DNA from: Octopus vulgaris
Lineage: Eukaryota
Assembly: GCA_951406725.2 (NCBI GenBank)
Contig: OX597814.1
Coordinates: forward strand, 169,156,001 to 169,218,000
Direction: 5' to 3'
DNA: 62,000 nt
Position numbers and translations under genes: made by a program. Under the pieces are notes generated by a model that worked only from the letters and a program-made list of their open reading frames with translations, was not told the DNA's origin and ran no database searches. This document shows positions 9,200-43,620 of this stretch, one piece after another (within the stretch, counting starts at the first letter, position 1; each line of letters starts with the position of its first letter).

Positions 9200-11330
9200 C
9201 AACCACTCCGAGAGTGTAGTGGGTGATTTTATGTGCCACCGACACAGGTGCCAGACGAGGCTGGCGAACGGCCACGCTCGGATGGTGTTTTTATGTGCCA
9301 CCGACACAGGTGCCAGACGAGGCTGGCGAACGGCCACGCTCGGATGGTGTTTTTATGTGCCACCGACACAGGTGCCAGACGAGGCTGGCGAACGGCCACG
9401 ATCGGATGGTGTTTCTTACGTGCCCACAGCACGGAGGCCAGTCGATGCGGTACTGGCTACGGCCACGTTCGGATGGCTTTCTTGTGTGCCACCGGCACTG
9501 GTACCACAAAGATACAAATTCCATTGATGTTCATCTATTTTGATTTGATTTGATTTGATTTTCACTTGCCTCAACAGGTCTTCACAAGTGTCACAAGAAG
9601 GAAGGAAGGTATGCACAGGTGAACTGACAACGTCCCAGGTAGGGGACCACGGGTTATGGCCTGACTAGTCTTGCCGGGTCTTCGGATGATGTTTTTATGT
9701 GCCTCCGACACAGGTGCCAGATGGATGGTGTTTGTTACGTGCCCACAGCACGGAGGCCAGTCGATGCGGTACTGTCTACGGCCACGTTCGGATGGTTTTC
9801 TTGTGTGCCACCGGCACTGGTACCACAAAGATACAAATTCCATTGATGTTCATCTATTTTGATTTGATTTGATTTCATTTGATTTGATCACTTGTCTCAA
9901 CAGGTCTTCACAAGTGTCACAAGAAGGAAGGTATGCACAGGCGGACTGACTACGTCCCAGGTAGGGGCCACGGGTTATGGCCTGACTAGTCTTGCTGGGT
10001 CTTCAGATCATGTTTTTATGTGCCTCCGACACAGGTGCCAGATGGATGGTGTTTGTTACGTGCCCACAGCACGGAGGCCAGTCGATGCGGTACTGTCTAC
10101 GGCCACGTTCGGATGGTTTTCTTGTGTTCCACCGGCCCTGGTACCACAAAGATACAAATTCCATTGATGTTCATCTATTTTGATTTGTTTTGATTTGATC
10201 ACTTGCCTCAACAGGTCTTCACAAGTGTCACAAGAAGGAAGGTATGCACAGGCGGACTGACTACGTCCCAGGTAGGGGCCACGGGTTATGGCCTGACTAG
10301 TCTTGCCGGGTCTTCAGATGGTGTTTTTACGTGCCACCGACACAGGTGCCAGATGAGGCTGGCGAACGGCCACGATCGGATGGTGTTTGTTATGAGCCCA
10401 CAGCACAGAGGCCAGTCGATGCGGTACTGTCTACGGCCACGTTCGGATGGTTTTCTTGTGTGCCACCGGCACTGGTACCACAAAGATACAAATTCCATTG
10501 ATGTTCATCTATTTTGATTTGATTTGATTTGATTTGATCACTTGCCTCAACAGGTCTTCACAAGTGTCACAAGAAGGAAGGTATGCAGGCGGACTGACTA
10601 CGTCCCAGGTAGGGGCCACGGGTTATGGCCTGACTAGTCTTGCCGGGTCTTCAGATGGTGTTTTTACGTGCCACCGACACAGGTGCCAGATGAGGCTGGC
10701 GAACGGCCACGATCGGATGGTGTTTGTTATGAGCCCACAGCACAGAGGCCAGTCGATGCGGTACTGTCTACGGCCACGTTCGGATGGTTTTCTTGTGTGC
10801 CACCGGCACTGGTACCACAAAGATACAAATTCCATTGATGTTCATCTATTTTGATTTGATTTGATTTGATTTGATCACTTGTCTCAACAGGTCTTCACAA
10901 GTGTCACAAGAAGGGAGGTATGCACAGGTGGACTGACTACGTCCCAGGTAGGGGCCACGGGTTATGGCCTGACTAGTCTTGCCGGGTCTTCGGATGGTGT
11001 CTTTATGTGCCACCGACACAGGTGCCAGATGAGGCTGGCGAACGGCCACGATCGGATGGTGTTTGCTATGTGCCCACAGCACGGAGGCCAGTCAATGCGG
11101 CACTGGCTACGGCCACGTTCGGATGGTTTTCTTGTGTGCCACCGGCACTGGTAACAAAGATACAAATTCCATTGATGATCATCTATTTTATTTTGATTTT
11201 CACTTTCACTTGCCTCAACAGGTCTTCACAAGTGTCACAAGAAGGAAGGTATGCACAGGTGGACTGACTACGTCCCAGGTAGGGGCCACGGGTTATGGCC
11301 TGACTACTCTTGCCGGGTCTTCTCATGCAC
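9200..11330 (-). repeat. Tandem array of the RTE 3' UTR: five full 319-337 bp units plus partial, and 3 x 62-bp modules
   Basis: Marker GATACAAATTCC at 9511, 9830, 10151, 10485, 10822, 11159; 62-bp period at 9234, 9296, 9358. Confidence 0.95.
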
Positions 11331-12950
11331 AGCATACTTCCATAGGTCTCGGTCTCTAGTCATTTCCTTGGTGAGACCTAAAGTTCGAAGGTCGTGCTTC
11401 ACCACCTCGTCCCAGGTTTTCCTGGGTCTACCTCTTCCACAGGTTCCCTCAACTGCTAGGGTGTAGCACTTTTGCACACAACTATCTACAGCCATTCTCG
11501 TCACATGACCATACCAGCGCAGCCGTCTCTCTTGCACACCACAATTGACGCTTCTTAGGTTCAACTTTTCTCTCAAGGTACTTACACTCTGACGATTATG
11601 AACACTGACATTACACATCCATCGGAGCATACTGGCTTCATTTCTTGCAAGCTTACGCATATCCTCAGCAGTCACGGCCCATGTTTCACTACCATGTAGC
11701 ATGGCTGTACGTACACATGCATCATACAGTCTGCCTTTTACTCTGAGCGAGAGGCCTTTTGTCACCAGCAGGGGTAAGAGCTCTCTAAACTTTGCCCAAG
11801 CTATTCTTACTCTAGCAGTTACACTTTCAGCACACCCACCCCCGCTCCTGACTTGGTCTCCTAGGTAGCGGAAGCTATCAACTACTTCTAGTTTGTCTCC
11901 CTGGAACGTGGTAGAAGTTGGTCTCTGCACATTTCCAGTGTTTATTGCTCCTGAGCATCTGCCACGGACAAAAACTATTTTCTTAGTTAGCCTTCCTTTG
12001 ACATTGCTGCACCTCTTATGTGTCCATAGCTTACACTTGGTGCACCTTATAGAGTTTCTACCTACACCTTTTTTACAGATCGAGCAGGGCCATCTACCTG
12101 AAGTCGTTTGTGATTGGTCCACCTTCCTACTTATTAGGACTTTGGTTTTGGCTAGGTTGATTCTAAGGCCCTTCGATTCTAATCCTTGTTTCCACACCTG
12201 AAACTTCTCCTCCAGTTCTGATAGTGACTCAGCAATTAGAGCAAGGTCATCAGCATAGAGGAGCTCCCAGGGGCATCCTGTCTTGAATTCCTCCGTTATT
12301 GCTTGGAGGACTATGATAAATAGGAGGGGACTGAGGACTGAACCTTGGTGGACCCCAACCTCTACCCGGAATTCTTCACTGTACTCGTTGCCAACCCTCA
12401 CCTTACTAGCAGCGTCTCTGTACATGGCTTGCACAGCTCTCACTAACCATTCATCTATCCCTAGTTTCCTCATTGACCACCAGATAAGGGATCGGGGGAC
12501 CCTGTCAAAGGCTTTCTCCAAGTCAACAAAAGCCAGGTACAAGGGCTTGTCTTTGGCTAGGTATTTCTCCTGCAGCTGTCTTACCAGGAATATAGCATCA
12601 CTAGTACTTTTCCCTGGCACGAACCCAAACTGCATATCATCTAAGCTGACACTCTCTCTAATTAGTTGGGCTATAACCCTCTCCGTAACCTTCATTACCT
12701 GATCCAGCAGCTTGATGCCTCTGTAGTTATTTGTATCTAGGGCGTCGCCTTTACCTTTGTAGCAGTTGACTATTATGCTGCTACACCAGTCATTGGGTAT
12801 GACTCCCTCGTGTATCACCTGGTTAACTATACGGGTGACTAAGCTATAGCCGACACCACCAGATATTTTGAGCATCTCTGCAGTAATTCCTGATGGGCCT
12901 GGAGCTTTCCCTGTTTTCATGCTTCTAATTGCCTTATCTACTAAGGAACT
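11304..12950 (-). CDS. Reverse transcriptase of RTE-clade LINE (no endonuclease, 5'-truncated), with Cys/His finger insert
   Basis: Motifs KAPGPSG, NYRGIKLL, QFGFVPG, FVDLEKAFDRV, GVHQGSVLSPLLF, LLYADDL, RLRWYGHV, RGRPRKTW; ORF-track upstream of 12950 is flanking microsatellite. Confidence 0.93.
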   Translation of the reverse strand, partial: SSLVDKAIRSMKTGKAPGPSGITAEMLKISGGVGYSLVTRIVNQVIHEGVIPNDWCSSIIVNCYKGKGDALDTNNYRGIKLLDQVMKVTERVIAQLIRESVSLDDMQFGFVPGKSTSDAIFLVRQLQEKYLAKDKPLYLAFVDLEKAFDRVPRSLIWWSMRKLGIDEWLVRAVQAMYRDAASKVRVGNEYSEEFRVEVGVHQGSVLSPLLFIIVLQAITEEFKTGCPWELLYADDLALIAESLSELEEKFQVWKQGLESKGLRINLAKTKVLISRKVDQSQTTSGRWPCSICKKGVGRNSIRCTKCKLWTHKRCSNVKGRLTKKIVFVRGRCSGAINTGNVQRPTSTTFQGDKLEVVDSFRYLGDQVRSGGGCAESVTARVRIAWAKFRELLPLLVTKGLSLRVKGRLYDACVRTAMLHGSETWAVTAEDMRKLARNEASMLRWMCNVSVHNRQSVSTLREKLNLRSVNCGVQERRLRWYGHVTRMAVDSCVQKCYTLAVEGTCGRGRPRKTWDEVVKHDLRTLGLTKEMTRDRDLWKYAVHEKTRQE

Positions 12951-13199
12951 GTTACACACACATACATATGTATGTAAGGATGCTGATGAGTTAATTATGA
13001 TTTTATTGAACATATTCACCATGTCAGATTCATACACTTATTGCAGCAGTCCTTCAGCTTTTCATAGCCCTGTAAAAGAACTCGGAAGTTTTGACCTTCA
13101 GCCCGACCTTTTGTGATATCCTTAAAACCCGGAGCTTTTTAGTACCTTCTCTTATATACATATATATTTTCATTATTTTTTGGTGGGGCTGATTCTCCA

Positions 13200-14087: not shown

Positions 14088-14502
14088 AGGCGGCGAGCTG
14101 GCAGAAACGTTAGCACGCCAGGCGAAATGCTTACCAGTATTTCATCTGCCGTTACGTTCTGAGTTCAAATTCCGCCGAGGTCGACTTTGCCTTTCGTCCT
14201 TTTAGGGTCAATAAATTAAGTACCAGTTATGCACTGGAGTCGATGTAATCGACTTAATCTGTTTGACTGTCCTTGTTTGTCCTCTCTGTGTTTAGCCCCT
14301 TGTGGGTAGTAAAGAAATAGGTATTTCGTCTGCCATTACGTTCTGAGTTCAAATTCCATCGAGGTCGACTTTGCCTTTCATCCTTTCAGGGTCGATAAAT
14401 TAAGCACCAGTTATGCACTGAGGTCGATGTAATTGACTTAATCCCTTTGTCTGTCCTTGTTTGTCCCTTCTATGTTTAGCCCCCTGTGGGCAATAAAGAA
14501 AT
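14088..14502 (+). mobile_element. SINE family B with internal tandem duplication and 14-bp TSD
   Basis: AAGAAATTGTTGTA at 14071-14084 and 14503-14516. Confidence 0.9.
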
Positions 14503-14900
14503 AAGAAATTGTTGTATACAGTGCTCAGGTGCACTACAATTAACGAGAAAAGAAAAAAATGCCATCAGTTGTACTGTGGGCAGATTTCAGGAAGTATGGA
14601 AAATTTGAAGGACATAGTGGCTTGACAGCTAACAACTGATGCAGGTAGCATATTCCATGTTTCAAGAATTGTGAGCGTGAAAAAGTATTTCTGAAAGTCA
14701 TGGGTGCTGTGTTGTTTTTTGATTCTTGGAACAGAAGAGGAATAAATATTTAGGAGCCAATCTCTTTCATTGTCTTGCATAGTTCTCTGCTGACACTGAT
14801 TGGCTGAAACTGACCAGTGTTGGTGTGTATGAAGTTCAGCCAATCTTGTGTCCCTATCTATTTGCCTTAACTGTAAGAAGTTTTTGTTTTTCTGTAAAAT
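14503..14900 (-). pseudogene. Decayed CR1/L2-type RT C-terminus and 3' UTR
   Basis: FFTLTILETWNMLPASVVSCQATMSFK matches the FF..R...WN.LP..VV......FK signature. Confidence 0.7.
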
Positions 14901-15259: not shown

Positions 15260-15610
15260 GTAGGCACAACTATGGTTAATGGTTAAGAAGCTTGTTTTGC
15301 AATGACATGGTTCATGGTTCAGTTCCTTTGCATGGCACTTTGAACACGTGTTTTCCACAAATTCCTTGGGCCAACCAATGTCTTGTGAGTGAATTTGGTT
15401 GATACGTGTTTGTGTTTGTGCCCCATCACTACTTGACATCTAGTGCTGATTTGTTTACATTCCTTTAACTCAGTGGTTCAGCAAAAGAGACCAGTAGATT
15501 ATGCTCCAGACTAAAAATAAAATAACTTGCATCAATTTGTTCACTTAAACCCTTCAAAGCAGTGTTCCACTATGGCCACAATCCAATGACTGAAATAAGT
15601 AAAAGATATA
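15260..15610 (+). mobile_element. SINE family A, diverged
   Basis: Head ATGGTTAATGG / GGTTCAGTTCC; tail GACTGAAATAAGTAAAAG. Confidence 0.65.
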
Positions 15611-15800
15611 TATAATAATTAATAGCAACAGAAGTAGAATTAAACCCAAAAGGCAATCTTTATATCCAACTTAATGTAGATGTCTTGTTATAACACTGAA
15701 TGCTACATTATTTACTTTGAGAGAACCTCTCATATGGTGCCTATAAAGCACTGATATTTACATCGGTGACAGATGAGAATCATATGCTATGCATGCTGGA

Positions 15801-15848
15801 ACTGCCAGACCATGTGATTTCCACCTGCTTGGCCTCTTCAGTGGCAGT
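15801..15848 (-). ncRNA. Type I hammerhead ribozyme, core intact
   Basis: ACTGCCA/TGGCAGT 7-bp stem I, CTGAAGA, GCC/GGT stem II, GAAA, stem III, GTC| cleavage triplet. Confidence 0.8.
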
Positions 15849-15946
15849 GATCCAGTAGCAGCATAACAGTTGAAACTGATTGTCAATGATACATAGAATT
15901 TCAGTGTGTTTTCAGGCACTAATTTGACAAATAGCCATACAGGGAC

Positions 15947-15996
15947 AACTGCTACTGAAGAGATCAAGCAGGTCAAAATCATGTGATCTGACAGTT
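15947..15996 (+). ncRNA. Type I hammerhead ribozyme, G12A decayed, inverted partner of 15801-15848
   Basis: CTGAAGA 15955-15961, GATC/GGTC stem II, AAAA instead of GAAA, ATC-ATGT-GAT stem III, C| at 15988, stem I 7 of 8 paired. Confidence 0.75.
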
Positions 15997-16107
15997 CTGG
16001 CACCCATAGCAGATAATTTTTTTAATCTGCCAGTGATATAAATATGAGTGCTTTTATGCATCATTCCTTCATAAGAGAGGTCCTCTCAAAATAAATAATG
16101 CAATATT

Positions 16108-16440
16108 CAGTTTTTGCATTTGGTTTGCAAGATTCTTTATGTGAGCTTGTGTGTTGAAGCATATTTTGTTGTATCTGGGGAGAGTCATTCTCTTTTGGCG
16201 CCTTATAGTTTAACACACTCTCCGGTAAAATTTCCACTTATTTCTTTTTTCTTTTTTTTTCTTTTTCTAAAATTTTATCATTGTGTCTTGCAACCTTTTC
16301 AATAGTTTTGAAAAGGTTACAAGGCACAATGAAAATTTTAGAATAATAAAAAAATAAAATAAAAAAGAAATAAGTGGAAATTTTACCAGTGAGTGTGTTA
16401 AATTATAAGCCACCAAAAGAGAATGACTCTCCCCAGATAC
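16108..16440. mobile_element. Fold-back repeat, ~132-bp arms, 5-nt loop
   Basis: 16171-16302 reverse-complements 16308-16440; family also at 18395-18800 and 54125-54195. Confidence 0.8.
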
Positions 16441-16503
16441 AGAGGTATTTAGTGTTCTAACACAACCTCCATGTTAAGTTGTATATAAAGTTTGCATTTT
16501 GAC

Positions 16504-16536
<33 letters not shown>

Positions 16537-16939
16537 TCACATGATCACATGACTGACCAGACTATCAAATGTTGTTACTCATCACTGGTCACGATGTGTT
16601 TTACATCGCCTGGCTAAGTGAGAAGCTAACATTCTCCTGCTGATTGAAAAGGGGACTGAATGAATGTGAAACAAATTGTTTTGCCTAAGAGCACAATATA
16701 CCACCTGGTCTGGGAATCGATCCCATGAATCTAGTGATCATCAGTGCAAAGGCCTAACCACTAGTTCACATATATGTGTGTGCGTGTACACACACTTCCT
16801 GAATATACTTACTTATATAGCCAGGTATACATCATCATCTTCAGCATTTTTACCTCCACTTTTCCATAGTATGAGTTGGAGGGGCTCTTTTATGGCACAG
16901 TTTTATAACCAGATTCCTTTACCCACACCAGCCTTTCTA

Positions 16940-17506
16940 TTGGGTTGTCCAGAAAGTTCATGCCGATTTATTGTAGCTTACCTCTCGACTTCAATTTAGA
17001 ACATGGTTGAGTCCATAAAATAGAATTTGGCTACACCTCCATTTAGAGAACAGTTTAAGCTATGTTTTCATGGAAGAAGGTTTATGTTCCTATGACCTGT
17101 GTTAATTCTGTAACCCTTTAAAATGGAAGATAAGAAAGTTCATTTCCGGCACTTGATGCTTTGGGAACCAGACAAAAATTGATGCAGCTCGGCTAGGATG
17201 TGTTACCCCACCCTCCATATTCACCAGATATTGCTCCTTTGGATTTCTACTTATTCAGGTCTCTGCAGAATAGTCTTAATGGTAAAAATTTCAATTCCTT
17301 GGATGACGTAAAAAAATACCTTGATGAATTCTTTGCCATGAAACCACCTCAATTCTGTGAAGAGGGTATTTTCAAGTTAAAGGAAAGATGGAGACACATT
17401 GTGCAACAAAATGGTTCATATTTGGTTGATTAAAAATGTAATGGTAAGTATTTATTTACCTTTTTCTTTCCTTTAAAAATTGGCATGAACTTTTCGGACA
17501 ACCCAA
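16940..17506 (+). mobile_element. Non-autonomous mariner (internal deletion derivative)
   Basis: TIRs and TA TSD; MEDKKVHFRHLMLWE fused out of frame to LPHPPYSPDIAPLDF...ERWRHIVQQNGSY. Confidence 0.93.
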
Positions 17507-17927
17507 TAGTTTGCTCTTAAGACTTGTTATATAAGTAAATCAATATGAATGTTTACATTCATTTAATCATTTTATGCAAGGATATATTTATACCTGTAGG
17601 TATGTATGAAGATGTTGACATTTGTTAACTAATATTTTTTTTAGCAACTTAGTGTAAAAAGCTTGCTTTATATTTTAATTGATTAATATGTAAGAGAAAT
17701 AATGAGGATAAAGAGAAATGGAGGTGAGAAGGAAAGATCAGGGATAGGATGATAAATAAGGATGAGAAAGAGAGATAAAGAATAGTCAGAGAAATAAGAG
17801 GGAGAAAGAGAAACGTGGGAGGAGGGGAAAGAAAAAAGTTGAAACAAGTTGAAAATGATAAGGGGCAAGAGAAACAAGAGAGGAGCAGGGGGAGTAAGAG
17901 ACACAAATGAAATAGAAATAGCTCACA

Positions 17928-40718: not shown

Positions 40719-42882
40719 TATGTTTGACTTTTGCTTTATATTTGTACAAGTTGGCTCCAAGTCTCACCCAGAGACCTCAAGAGACAACAGGTTGGAAGTT
40801 CATGTTGTTGTTATGCCTAGTGTGCCATATATTTGGGGGGCAGTTTTTGGTGTTGTACTAATGAATGTCTAAAAAAATAAATAAATAAATAAATAAATAA
40901 AAATAAAAATTTTTTTTTTTTCCTTTCTCTTAAAAACCGAAAATTATGTTTGTTTTAAACCTTGAGATTACATAGAAAGTATTTTGCGTAGGATATGAGC
41001 AGTTCCCATGAGCACTATCTTTTGAATTTCTGCCATTTTTGGGTTTCCTGGTATCTGAGTTAGGTAGCTATCAGCCCCTTTTGCTATCATTCCCAGGGCA
41101 CCTATGACAACAGGTAATGTTTTAGTCTTCAGGTTCCACATTTTGCTGATTTCTATTTCAAGATCTTTATACTTGCTCAGTTTTTGGTAGGTCTTGACAC
41201 ATACGTTTATATCGATTGGGACAGTCATATCAATGAGGAGGCATGTTCTTTGTTTGAAGTCTTTCAATATGATATCTGGCCTATTTGCATCTATCTTTCT
41301 GTCAGTTTGAATGGTGAAGTTCCAGAGGAGTGAGATGTGGTCATTTTCAAGCACTGGGGGTGGTTTGTGTTCCCACCAGTTTTTTTCATGGGGCAAATCC
41401 AAGTTTTTGCAGATTACCCAGTGAATATATTGTGCAGCTCTATCGTGTCTGTTGAGATACTCTGTAGGCGCTAGAAGACTGCACTTGGAGACCACATGGT
41501 CAATGGCTTCATTTTGTTGCTGGCATACACGACACGTTGGACTACTTCTGATCTTTAATATGTTGGCCAGGTAGTTTCTTGTTGGTAGGCTTGAGCTGCT
41601 ATGATAAACCCCTCTGTTTCAGATTTTAAGCCAGAGGCCTTTAGCCATTGATGGGTCAGGGCTTTGTCAACATCTGCATTATTTGGGTATTTGCCATAGA
41701 GAGGTTTTTCTTGCCATTTATCATTCAGAATATCTAAGGCCGCAGATTTAGCACGGGTTTTCATGCGCTTAGCTTTTTCTGTGCCTGTTTCTTGTATGTC
41801 TATCTCTAATTCCGAAATTTGTTGTATTCGGAATTCACTTAGATATTCCATTGCCTATTTTGTTACTGAGTATGATGCTTTCTTGTTTTCATGTTTTGAG
41901 ACAAGTTTTAACATCCAGTCCTCAGAGTTTTTCAGGTAGGTGTCTAGGCCAATTGTAGCAATCTTCATTGTTACTGCCAGTTGAAAAGTCCACGGCCTCC
42001 CTCTTTTCTTGGCAGATAAAGTCGTTCTGTATCTGCCTTAGGGTGGTGCATTCTATGCATTGTCAACAGTTTTCGTATATTCCTGTCAAGATTACATATT
42101 TCAGTAATTGACCAGTTAACGATATTGAAACTGTAAGTCACAACTGGTATGGCCAATGCATTGATCGCTTCGATCCTGTTTCTCGCATTCAGCTCTGTCT
42201 TGAGTATTGCTCTTACTCTGCGATAACATTCTCTCCTGATCCTTTCCTTCATCTCTGAATGCCTTATTCCTTCTCCTTCAATTACCCCTAGATACTTGTA
42301 GTTCTCTGCTGGGTCTAATTCTTTTATGACATTCTGCTGGTCAAGGTTAACATTAGATGTTTCTGTAATTTTTCCTTTGATAAAGGTAGCTTTTGCACAC
42401 TTATCGAGGCCAAATTGCATTCTGATGTCATCACTGAATTGTTTGACAATCGCTAGTAAGGCCTTGAGTTGTTGGTCATTTTTTGCAAAGAGCTTTAAAT
42501 CATCCATGGAAATGAGATGATTTATATTTTTATCAAACATTTTATACCCGTACTGCGCATCATTGAGCAGTTTTGAGAGAGGTATTAAGGCTAAACAGAA
42601 GAGGAGTGGTGATAGTGAGTCACCCTGGAAAATGCCACATGAAATTTTTACATCACTAGCATTTAGAGATTCATTGTCACTGTTCAAAGTTAGTGTGGTT
42701 CTCCATGATCTCATACTTACAGACAAAAAGTTTCGCAGAGCAGGTGCTATCTTATACATTTCTAGGCATTTCTTAATCCAGCTATGTGGTAGGCTATCAA
42801 AAGCCTTTTTATAGTCTATCCAGGCTATCGATAAGTTTTTGTGTCGTTTGTAACAATCTTCTAAGATCATCTTATTGATGAG
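40575..42882 (-). mobile_element. R4/Dong-clade non-LTR retrotransposon, 5'-truncated, between (TAA)n tracts
   Basis: RT followed by zinc knuckle and restriction-like endonuclease; (TAA)n at 40575-40717 and 42883-43035. Confidence 0.9.
40968..42882 (-). pseudogene. Disrupted RT / zinc knuckle / RLE endonuclease ORF
   Basis: WIDYKKAFDS, GIFQGDSLSPLLF, HLISMDD (Y of YMDD replaced), WLKASGLKSETEG, RHD, NRPDII...LLID, KY.DL; split over three ORFs. Confidence 0.9.
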
Positions 42883-42945
42883 TATTATTATTATTATTAC
42901 TATTATTATTACTATTATTATTATTACTATTATTATTATTATTAC

Positions 42946-42999
<54 letters not shown>

Positions 43000-43620
43000 T
43001 ACTATTATTATTGTTATTGTTATTATTATCATTATTTTGTATTTCTCTCCAGTTTAGTTAAATTCCTTTCTAACCATTATCTCTTTCTCATTCACACATC
43101 AATAGATTAGTGCAACTGGTTGCTACTTTAAAGAGATTGAATGTCTGCTTGCTTGTTTTTAAGACTGGGAACATAGTTTTTTTTCTTGCCATTCTCAGAG
43201 TTGTGGCTAATGTTATTCTGGAAATTGAGGATTGCTGTCTTGGATGGTTTCTATTGCTTCCTCTTCTTGTTTTCTTGCCCAGTCTTTCTAGTTCTTCAAG
43301 GCAGAAGGCTCTGACGTGGCTCTTACTATGATGACCTGTGTATCAATGAAGCTATTTTCCCCTTCGCCATTCATCTCAACACTTTCAACAATGGCATTGT
43401 GGTCTAGGGTATCATTAGAACTTGCAAATCTATTTTGATGCCATTTAGCTCCATATCACCTGTCACCAGTCCAGCTAAAATCACCTGCTCATACAGCAAT
43501 ATAAAAATGATGACCAGCCATTGTTTTACATTATTTTCAATGTCCTCTTCTCATTACCCTTGTATTTTTCTACCCCATACACTGGAGTACAAGATAATCA
43601 GTCCTTATATTTTTTGTGTA

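Follow-up and report, generated by a model that had tools for sequence, protein, structure and literature searches.

Facing hammerhead motifs in the Octopus vulgaris genome as the probable relic of a non-autonomous, retrozyme-like element with Penelope-type insertion architecture

We found that two facing type I hammerhead (HHR) motifs in the genome of Octopus vulgaris lie in the opposite arms of a composite repeat insertion, and we conclude, with a rough probability of 0.78, that this composite is a single old insertion of a short retroelement, non-autonomous and HHR-bearing, of the non-LTR retrozyme or Penelope-like element (PLE) passenger kind. The insertion would have been made by a PLE enzyme in a single event, and the ribozyme would have been active and had its role in the source element. 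The motifs, the repeat family, the covariation of its stems, its insertion architecture and its CpG decay were observed directly. The element is of a known kind, and the locus is an ordinary instance of it.

The window, by which we mean the whole 62,000-nt stretch of DNA that was analysed, contains the complete composite at 15614-16501. Its inverted repeat arms, at 15692-15853 and 15943-16114, form an imperfect palindrome of ~420 bp, and the span of 15795-16000 given in the initial annotation was therefore too short. The features of the composite and its flanks are as follows.

15606-15613, unstranded: (TA)4 microsatellite remnant of the left flank, read directly; it matches the (TA)n of the right flank.
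15614-15631, minus: 'tail' after the 3′ end of the left copy, unit positions 1-18 (blastn against the family consensus, 18/18).
15632-15937, minus: left copy of a 346-nt repeat, unit positions 34-346, with 33 nt missing at the 5′ end (84.4% identity to the consensus).
15786-15859, minus: left-copy hammerhead (family covariance model R1, 83.9 bits, this copy being among the sequences that built R1; Hammerhead_HH9, 20.8 bits; lenient HHR descriptor passed).
15938-15948, unstranded: 11-nt junction of the abutting 5′ ends (consensus annotation).
15936-16010, plus: right-copy hammerhead (R1, 63.7 bits; Hammerhead_HH9, 12.5 bits; lenient descriptor failed, owing to G12).
15949-16114, plus: right copy, part one, unit positions 124-286 (86.1% identity to the consensus).
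16115-16444, unstranded: later insertion splitting the right copy, with an inverted repeat inside it; the consensus resumes at 16445.
16445-16501, plus: right copy, part two, unit positions 275-331, with a 'short' 3′ terminus that has no tail (89.5% identity to the consensus).
16503-16537, unstranded: (TA)n(CA)n microsatellite of the right flank, read directly.

The composite thus carries a tail on its left end and a short end on its right, with (TA)n at both flanks. The right copy is truncated at the ribozyme's 5′ edge and therefore lacks the outer extension of helix I. The later insertion consists of a 272-bp hairpin element (16170-16441) and 58 nt of unassigned sequence; the hairpin element has 97-nt terminal inverted repeats that are 91% complementary, and Rfam plant-miRNA models score far below threshold on it. 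A possible 7-nt duplication (TATTCAG / TATTTAG) accompanies this insertion. Matches of the window to plant and animal miRNA models of Rfam at the E-value level were rejected as hairpin or microsatellite artefacts.

The head-to-head hammerhead pair reported by the initial annotation is present, with both motifs legible by direct reading. Read from 15859 to 15786, the minus motif is GCUACUGGAUCA CUGCCA CUGAAGA GGCCAAGCAGGUG GAA AUCACAUGGU C/UGGCAG, in which the slash marks the predicted cut after C17 at 15808. It has a helix I of 7 bp and a GUC site, as described before, and its core of CUGAAGA, GAAA and GUC is kept whole. The description of this copy as near-canonical overlooked, however, a C11.1-to-G change at 15822, through which a G10.1-G11.1 mismatch replaces the conserved G10.1-C11.1 pair. 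Disruption of pair 10.1-11.1 is expected from established hammerhead mutagenesis to cut activity strongly, and by this standard the minus ribozyme is probably crippled, with strongly reduced activity. The CpG of its stem III loop is now CA.

The plus motif at 15936-16010 reads CUGCUA CUGAAGA GAUCAAGCAGGUC AAA AUCAUGUGAU C/UGACAG, with C17 at 15988. The change of CGAAA to CAAAA that had been noticed in this copy is correct; it is a G12-to-A substitution at 15975, and it breaks the conserved core. Because the catalytic G12 is gone, the plus ribozyme is, judged from its sequence, dead. Its helix I contains one C-A mismatch, and the CpG of its stem III loop is now TG. Overall, the locus is an old, inactive relic, and it shows no sign of a host function.

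To place the locus in its genome, the region 15690-16115 was used as a query against the genome to which the window belongs (227 sequences, 2.80 Gb), which returned at least 93 matches of 67-86% identity on many chromosomes. From the aligned matches we derived a consensus unit of 346 nt with 39% GC. The median identity to this consensus is 80%, and the Jukes-Cantor distance is 0.23 (61 copies of at least 150 nt), close to the value of 0.2 at which a published repeat study of O. vulgaris dated a burst of PLEs and LINEs. The two arms in the window are 5′-truncated copies of this dispersed, non-coding repeat.

The genome-wide number of HHR-bearing copies, counted by pattern search, is at least 1,291. 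This is the number of matches (650 plus, 641 minus) to a 23-nt pattern that spans the GAAA of the family, its helix III and the 3′ half of its helix I, with as many as 3 mismatches permitted; the reversed control gave 0, and the motifs thus lie far above chance. A 27-position core pattern (CTGANGA, a gap, then GAAATCAYRTGATCTGGCAG) gave 44 matches, against 0 in its reversed control. Copies are dispersed across all chromosomes and about equally over both strands.

The longest stop-to-stop frame in 15600-16520 does not exceed 87 aa, and a tblastn comparison of a PLE ORF with the window gave no match. The initial annotation stated that no ORF remains, but the 346-nt unit never carried one. Accordingly, of the two identities initially offered for the locus, the distinct non-coding ribozyme element is upheld, whereas the inverted-pLTR relic of a coding PLE is not.

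With its CpGs restored from the mixture of CG, TG and CA states, the family consensus is GCUACCGGAUGU-CUGCCA-CUGAAGA-GACCAGGCAGGUC-GAA-AUCACGUGAU-C/UGGCAG-UUCCGGCACCCGUAGC. It folds on paper into a helix I of 6 bp, which continues beyond an internal loop into a pair of outer helices, a helix II of 4 bp without a bulge, and a helix III of 3 bp closed by an ACGU loop. The core is complete, and the consensus can be read as a canonical type I hammerhead. Helix III and its loop together form the 10-nt palindrome AUCACGUGAU. The whole HHR core, as judged by the lenient descriptor, is kept in 12 of 37 copies that were sampled irrespective of the ribozyme.

The reported stem III strings, ATCACATGGT in one window copy and ATCATGTGAT in the other, are as described, and the palindromic ancestor ATCACGTGAT proposed for them is confirmed by the relatives: in 64 copies the central dinucleotide of stem III is CG in 14, TG in 20, CA in 20 and TA in 5. 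The two window copies have indeed decayed in opposite ways. Because ~15 ancestral CpG sites of the unit show the same scatter of TG and CA, this reciprocal decay is ordinary CpG loss and has no special meaning. A surplus of TG relative to CA at the C11.1-G12 CpG was considered as a trace of selection and rejected, 30 of the loci having been chosen by a pattern that requires G12.

Covariation among the genomic copies, which the initial annotation had set as a test of the stems, is present. Helix II differs between subfamilies (GACC/GGUC, ACCC/GGGU, AGCG/CGCU and GACG/CGUC). In 65 copies aligned to the model, 82% of cells are paired, compared with 14-46% when the partners are slid, and double changes occur in 18 of 21 pairs; pair 10.2-11.2, for example, is AU in 25 copies, CG in 17 and GC in 8. 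All five covariation measures exceeded 500 of 500 shuffles and every slid control, in an alignment that was fitted to the model and in which a small number of subfamily splits supplies much of the signal.

In predicted folds, a two-ribozyme dimer reaches -37.7 kcal/mol, compared with -25.4 for two monomers, and helix III of the dimer has 10 bp. A circular unit is predicted to fold at -103, compared with -72.5 for shuffles (z = -5.7). This predicted dimer preference and strong self-pairing fit what has been published on metazoan type I HHRs and on the RNAs of retrozymes (PMC4209133, PMC7229834). The initial annotation named a palindromic stem III as a hallmark of Penelope-type hammerheads; in metazoan type I HHRs, a helix III that is small and palindromic is general (PMC4209133).

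Rfam at gathering thresholds gave no hammerhead match in the window, and the best model for both copies was Hammerhead_HH9 (RF02275, clan CL00010). This model has the same layout as the consensus, with an outer helix, an internal loop and helices of 6, 4 and 3 bp. Because even intact family members reach just 33-44.6 bits against HH9, under its gathering score of 52, an Rfam-based annotation would miss the family. The genome's best HH9 match, at 44.6 bits, is a locus of 30% GC on the minus strand (L031, C2:95134973-95135062); its sequence is unrelated to the 346-nt unit and marks a separate hammerhead lineage.

We annotated 52 non-redundant loci with the consensus and found an inverted, 5′-truncated copy adjoining the 5′ end of the main copy in 19 of them and, in a tail-to-tail arrangement at the 3′ end, in none. 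The gap at the junction, taken from 20 head-to-head pairs, is mostly 2-18 nt (median ~6), with outliers of 26 and 42 nt and one overlapping pair. The same layout would carry no mechanistic meaning if two insertions of an abundant repeat had landed side by side in opposite orientations by chance, and the family is abundant enough to invite that explanation; nested insertion also does happen at this locus, an example being the hairpin element inside the right copy. We nevertheless consider independent insertions quite improbable, since the pairs share one polarity with abutting 5′ ends while the opposite polarity was never seen, and since some 10^3-10^4 copies in 2.8 Gb make adjacency within 20 nt negligible by chance.

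The two window arms speak to the same question. They are about equally diverged at non-CpG sites (11.3% and 11.8%), which argues against independent insertions, but they have only 3 derived sites in common where ~0.8 would be expected, slightly above chance, a point in favour of independent insertions. We rejected these common mutations as proof of one event because the signal is too weak. With so small an excess over chance, the case for a single event at the window locus is drawn from the architecture of the family as a whole and not from this locus alone.

Inverted partners are one of several arrangements. A partial, direct, 5′-truncated tandem copy lies upstream in 24 of the 52 loci, often in inverted-direct-full triplets. 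Twenty loci hold solo copies, and 12 hold direct partial tandems without an inverted partner. These two classes are not what a foldback or MITE-type DNA transposon with a hammerhead-like sequence inside its terminal inverted repeats would produce, even though the window locus is a ~420-bp imperfect palindrome and MITE-like hairpins are common nearby. Such an element should also have fixed termini, whereas the inverted arm of this family starts anywhere from unit position 38 to 303, depending on the locus, and the outer ends are the 3′ ends of the unit with two alternative termini. A target-site duplication is not definable, and we saw none of fixed length flanking constant inverted termini. 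We therefore regard a DNA transposon as extremely improbable.

The 3′ ends fall into two groups ~40 nt apart: 23 are short (unit 317-335), 29 carry a tail (353-381) and 6 lie in between. The tail ends run past unit position 346 into the first 7-35 nt of a next unit. Among the ~10 head-to-head composites in which both ends could be scored, 7 combine one long and one short end, which suggests that the two DNA strands were primed at different RNA start sites. A dinucleotide microsatellite adjoins 13 of 58 terminal ends.

Mobilisation of the unit as a SINE by a LINE, with the inversion arising through twin priming during target-primed reverse transcription, would draw on an abundant source, as LINE reverse transcriptases are abundant both in the window and beside other copies of the family, and SINEs make up ~11.6% of the O. 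vulgaris genome according to the published repeat study. Twin priming, however, gives two non-overlapping parts of a single RNA, whereas both window arms carry the same unit region, 124-331. The unit also has neither poly(A) nor a LINE-type simple-repeat tail, and partial tandems together with a 40-nt alternative terminus are traits of PLEs and not of LINEs (PMC8557442). Taken together, these points make a LINE-mobilised SINE unlikely.

Most copies comprise 1 to 1.9 units, a few loci contain two ribozymes (e.g. L021 and L052), and no long tandem arrays of the family were seen at the 52 loci. These lengths bear on the idea that the locus was left by a tandem array, of retrozyme or satellite type, that was amplified by local unequal crossing-over and then rearranged by an inversion. 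In its favour, related HHR families do form exact tandem dimers of 361-373 nt, dimers occur within the family itself (as at L021), and local amplification of retrozymes has been proposed (bioRxiv 10.64898/2026.07.22.740005). Against it, the copies are spread over all chromosomes with 650 on one strand and 641 on the other, almost all of them are shorter than 2 units, and the inverted copy is always on the same side, which random inversions would not yield. An inverted array remnant is, on this evidence, very improbable.

The related exact tandem dimers, with a spacing of 361-373 nt, are located at C3:37682771-37683131, C14:62021441-62021803, C25:20213462-20213832 and C26:13402575-13402947. These four belong to HHR families with the same helix III palindrome and with UGGUG in place of UGGCAG in helix I, and they resemble retrozyme arrays.

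Each of the arrangements described for the octopus family has a counterpart in PLEs. PLE insertions show a high rate of 5′ truncation, partial tandems that form pLTRs and an inverted 5′-truncated copy at the 5′ end, as well as a 30-40-bp tail that is often single-ended and a bias towards microsatellites (PMC8557442); their preferred targets are reportedly AT-rich or microsatellite sequences (PMC8557442, PMC11167929). In work with a purified PLE enzyme, both strands of the DNA were cleaved and extended, and reverse transcription began at two internal sites, which determine the tail (PMC11167929). The octopus family displays the full PLE insertion signature, and the window locus contributes an inverted pair, a tail end combined with a short end, and (TA)n flanks. 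The head-to-head layout is thus most likely the insertion signature of a PLE-type mechanism and not a coincidence.

Under the PLE-passenger reading, the origin of the window locus can be outlined as follows. In the source element, the predicted type I HHR would have cut multimeric transcripts to unit length, and the 10-nt palindromic helix III may have favoured a fold of two ribozymes, as the modelled dimer indicates. A PLE RT/GIY-YIG enzyme would then have cleaved a (TA)n target on both strands, and cDNA synthesis on the element RNA would have been primed from both 3′ ends. The two cDNAs would have converged, ended prematurely at positions 34 and 124 of the unit, and been joined 5′ end to 5′ end. 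One of them presumably began at the distal RT start site, which would account for the 18-nt tail, and the other at the proximal site, which would leave the short end. After insertion, the copies decayed neutrally, reaching ~20% divergence with heavy CpG loss, and the hairpin element entered the right arm.

Because RT and GIY-YIG frames are abundant in the genome, PLE machinery is available to such an element. We counted at least 148 GIY-YIG matches, many of them inside open frames of 781 aa with RVT_1 and GIY-YIG. A linked reverse transcriptase had been suggested as something to look for once the family was retrieved; the family was recovered, but no link emerged at 30 PLE loci, each covering the EN domain ±1.5 kb. 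In these loci, the 346-nt unit found no similarity, the family model and the Rfam hammerheads found no match, and our own HHR descriptor found no consistent match. Beside other copies of the family we found no PLE ORFs, and the frames present there are LINE reverse transcriptases or low-complexity.

Three of the PLE loci (L071, L076 and L090; e.g. C16:20838796) belong to a young, abundant PLE with many 781-aa frames of RVT_1 and GIY-YIG. Identity between its copies is 91-98% across 2.2 kb or more, its 3′ UTR has internal repeats ~105 nt apart, and the 1.2 kb past its stop codon contain no hammerhead core.

We compared the family with known systems that it resembles. With non-LTR retrozymes (Cervera and de la Pena 2020, PMC7229834), which have been described in mussel, a mollusc, among other animals, it has in common a non-coding unit whose 346 nt lie within the range of 170-400 nt, a low GC content (39%), one canonical type I HHR per unit, head-to-tail repeats (here mostly partial) and an RNA that is here predicted to be strongly self-paired. 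It differs in that retrozymes form multimer arrays, whereas octopus copies mostly have a single unit or 1.1-1.9 units, and in that about a third of the octopus loci have an inverted 5′-truncated partner, which is not described in PMC7229834.

The likeness to PLEs in insertion architecture (Craig et al. 2021, PMC8557442; PMC11167929) extends over 5′ truncation, pLTR-like partial tandems, an inverted copy at the 5′ end, an optional ~40-nt tail that is mostly single-ended, AT-rich or microsatellite targets and the presence of the HHR in the repeated part. Unlike a PLE, the octopus unit lacks an RT/GIY-YIG ORF, and its length is a tenth of that of a PLE; because the ORF is absent, the unit is not an autonomous PLE.

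The minimal hammerheads of PLEs (min-HHRs) share with the octopus ribozyme the type I topology, a palindromic helix III, the G10.1-C11.1 pair that is ancestral in the octopus family, the presence in one genome of many diverging families that bear compensatory changes, and a dimeric fold as the predicted preference. Their helix III, however, is absent or 1 bp long and their helix II is longer and bulged, whereas the octopus HHR has helices of 6, 4 and 3 bp with a tetraloop. Because its helix III has 3 bp, the octopus ribozyme is not a PLE min-HHR. The connection to Penelope elements that had been drawn from the ribozymes is supported; the hammerhead is of the canonical and not the minimal Penelope type.

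On balance, the family is best classed as a non-LTR retrozyme-like, PLE-dependent, non-autonomous element with a canonical type I hammerhead. Because most copies have 1 to 1.9 units and do not form long tandem arrays, the retrozyme label is imperfect.

Retrozymes have been regarded as dependants of PLEs before (PMC7229834, bioRxiv 10.64898/2026.07.22.740005), and in vertebrates this link was proposed from common sequence and co-occurrence; insertion architecture was not used as an argument (bioRxiv 10.64898/2026.07.22.740005). We tentatively propose, at slightly under even odds, that the octopus family is a canonical-HHR retrozyme whose full PLE insertion signature reflects copying in trans by a PLE RT/EN primed on both strands, with a template that was perhaps circular or multimeric RNA and with local array amplification not being the main route. 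If true, this would provide direct structural evidence, in a mollusc, for the copying of retrozymes in trans by PLE RT/EN, and a circular or multimeric template would explain insertions that exceed one unit.

The insertion architecture is a modest new element and lends mechanistic support to the proposed PLE dependence of animal retrozymes. The locus also shows that two ribozymes which face each other in raw sequence are explicable by a known mechanism of retroelement insertion. The analysis further documents an HHR repeat family that Rfam thresholds miss, with over 1,000 copies, several subfamilies and an intact canonical ancestor; a literature search found no characterisation of hammerheads in Octopus vulgaris.

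Several further features were seen elsewhere in the window. A 577-aa frame on the minus strand (11304-13037) matches RVT_1 with 114.6 bits and has a weak PHD finger; it comes from a reverse transcriptase of LINE type. The minus strand has additional RT-like frames at 40968-41618 and 41971-43053. A two-copy tandem duplication with a 184-nt unit and 89% identity occupies 14137-14504. Finally, a 33-nt inverted repeat (16937-16969 / 17477-17509), 91% complementary and with its copies 507 nt apart, possibly represents the ends of a small DNA element.
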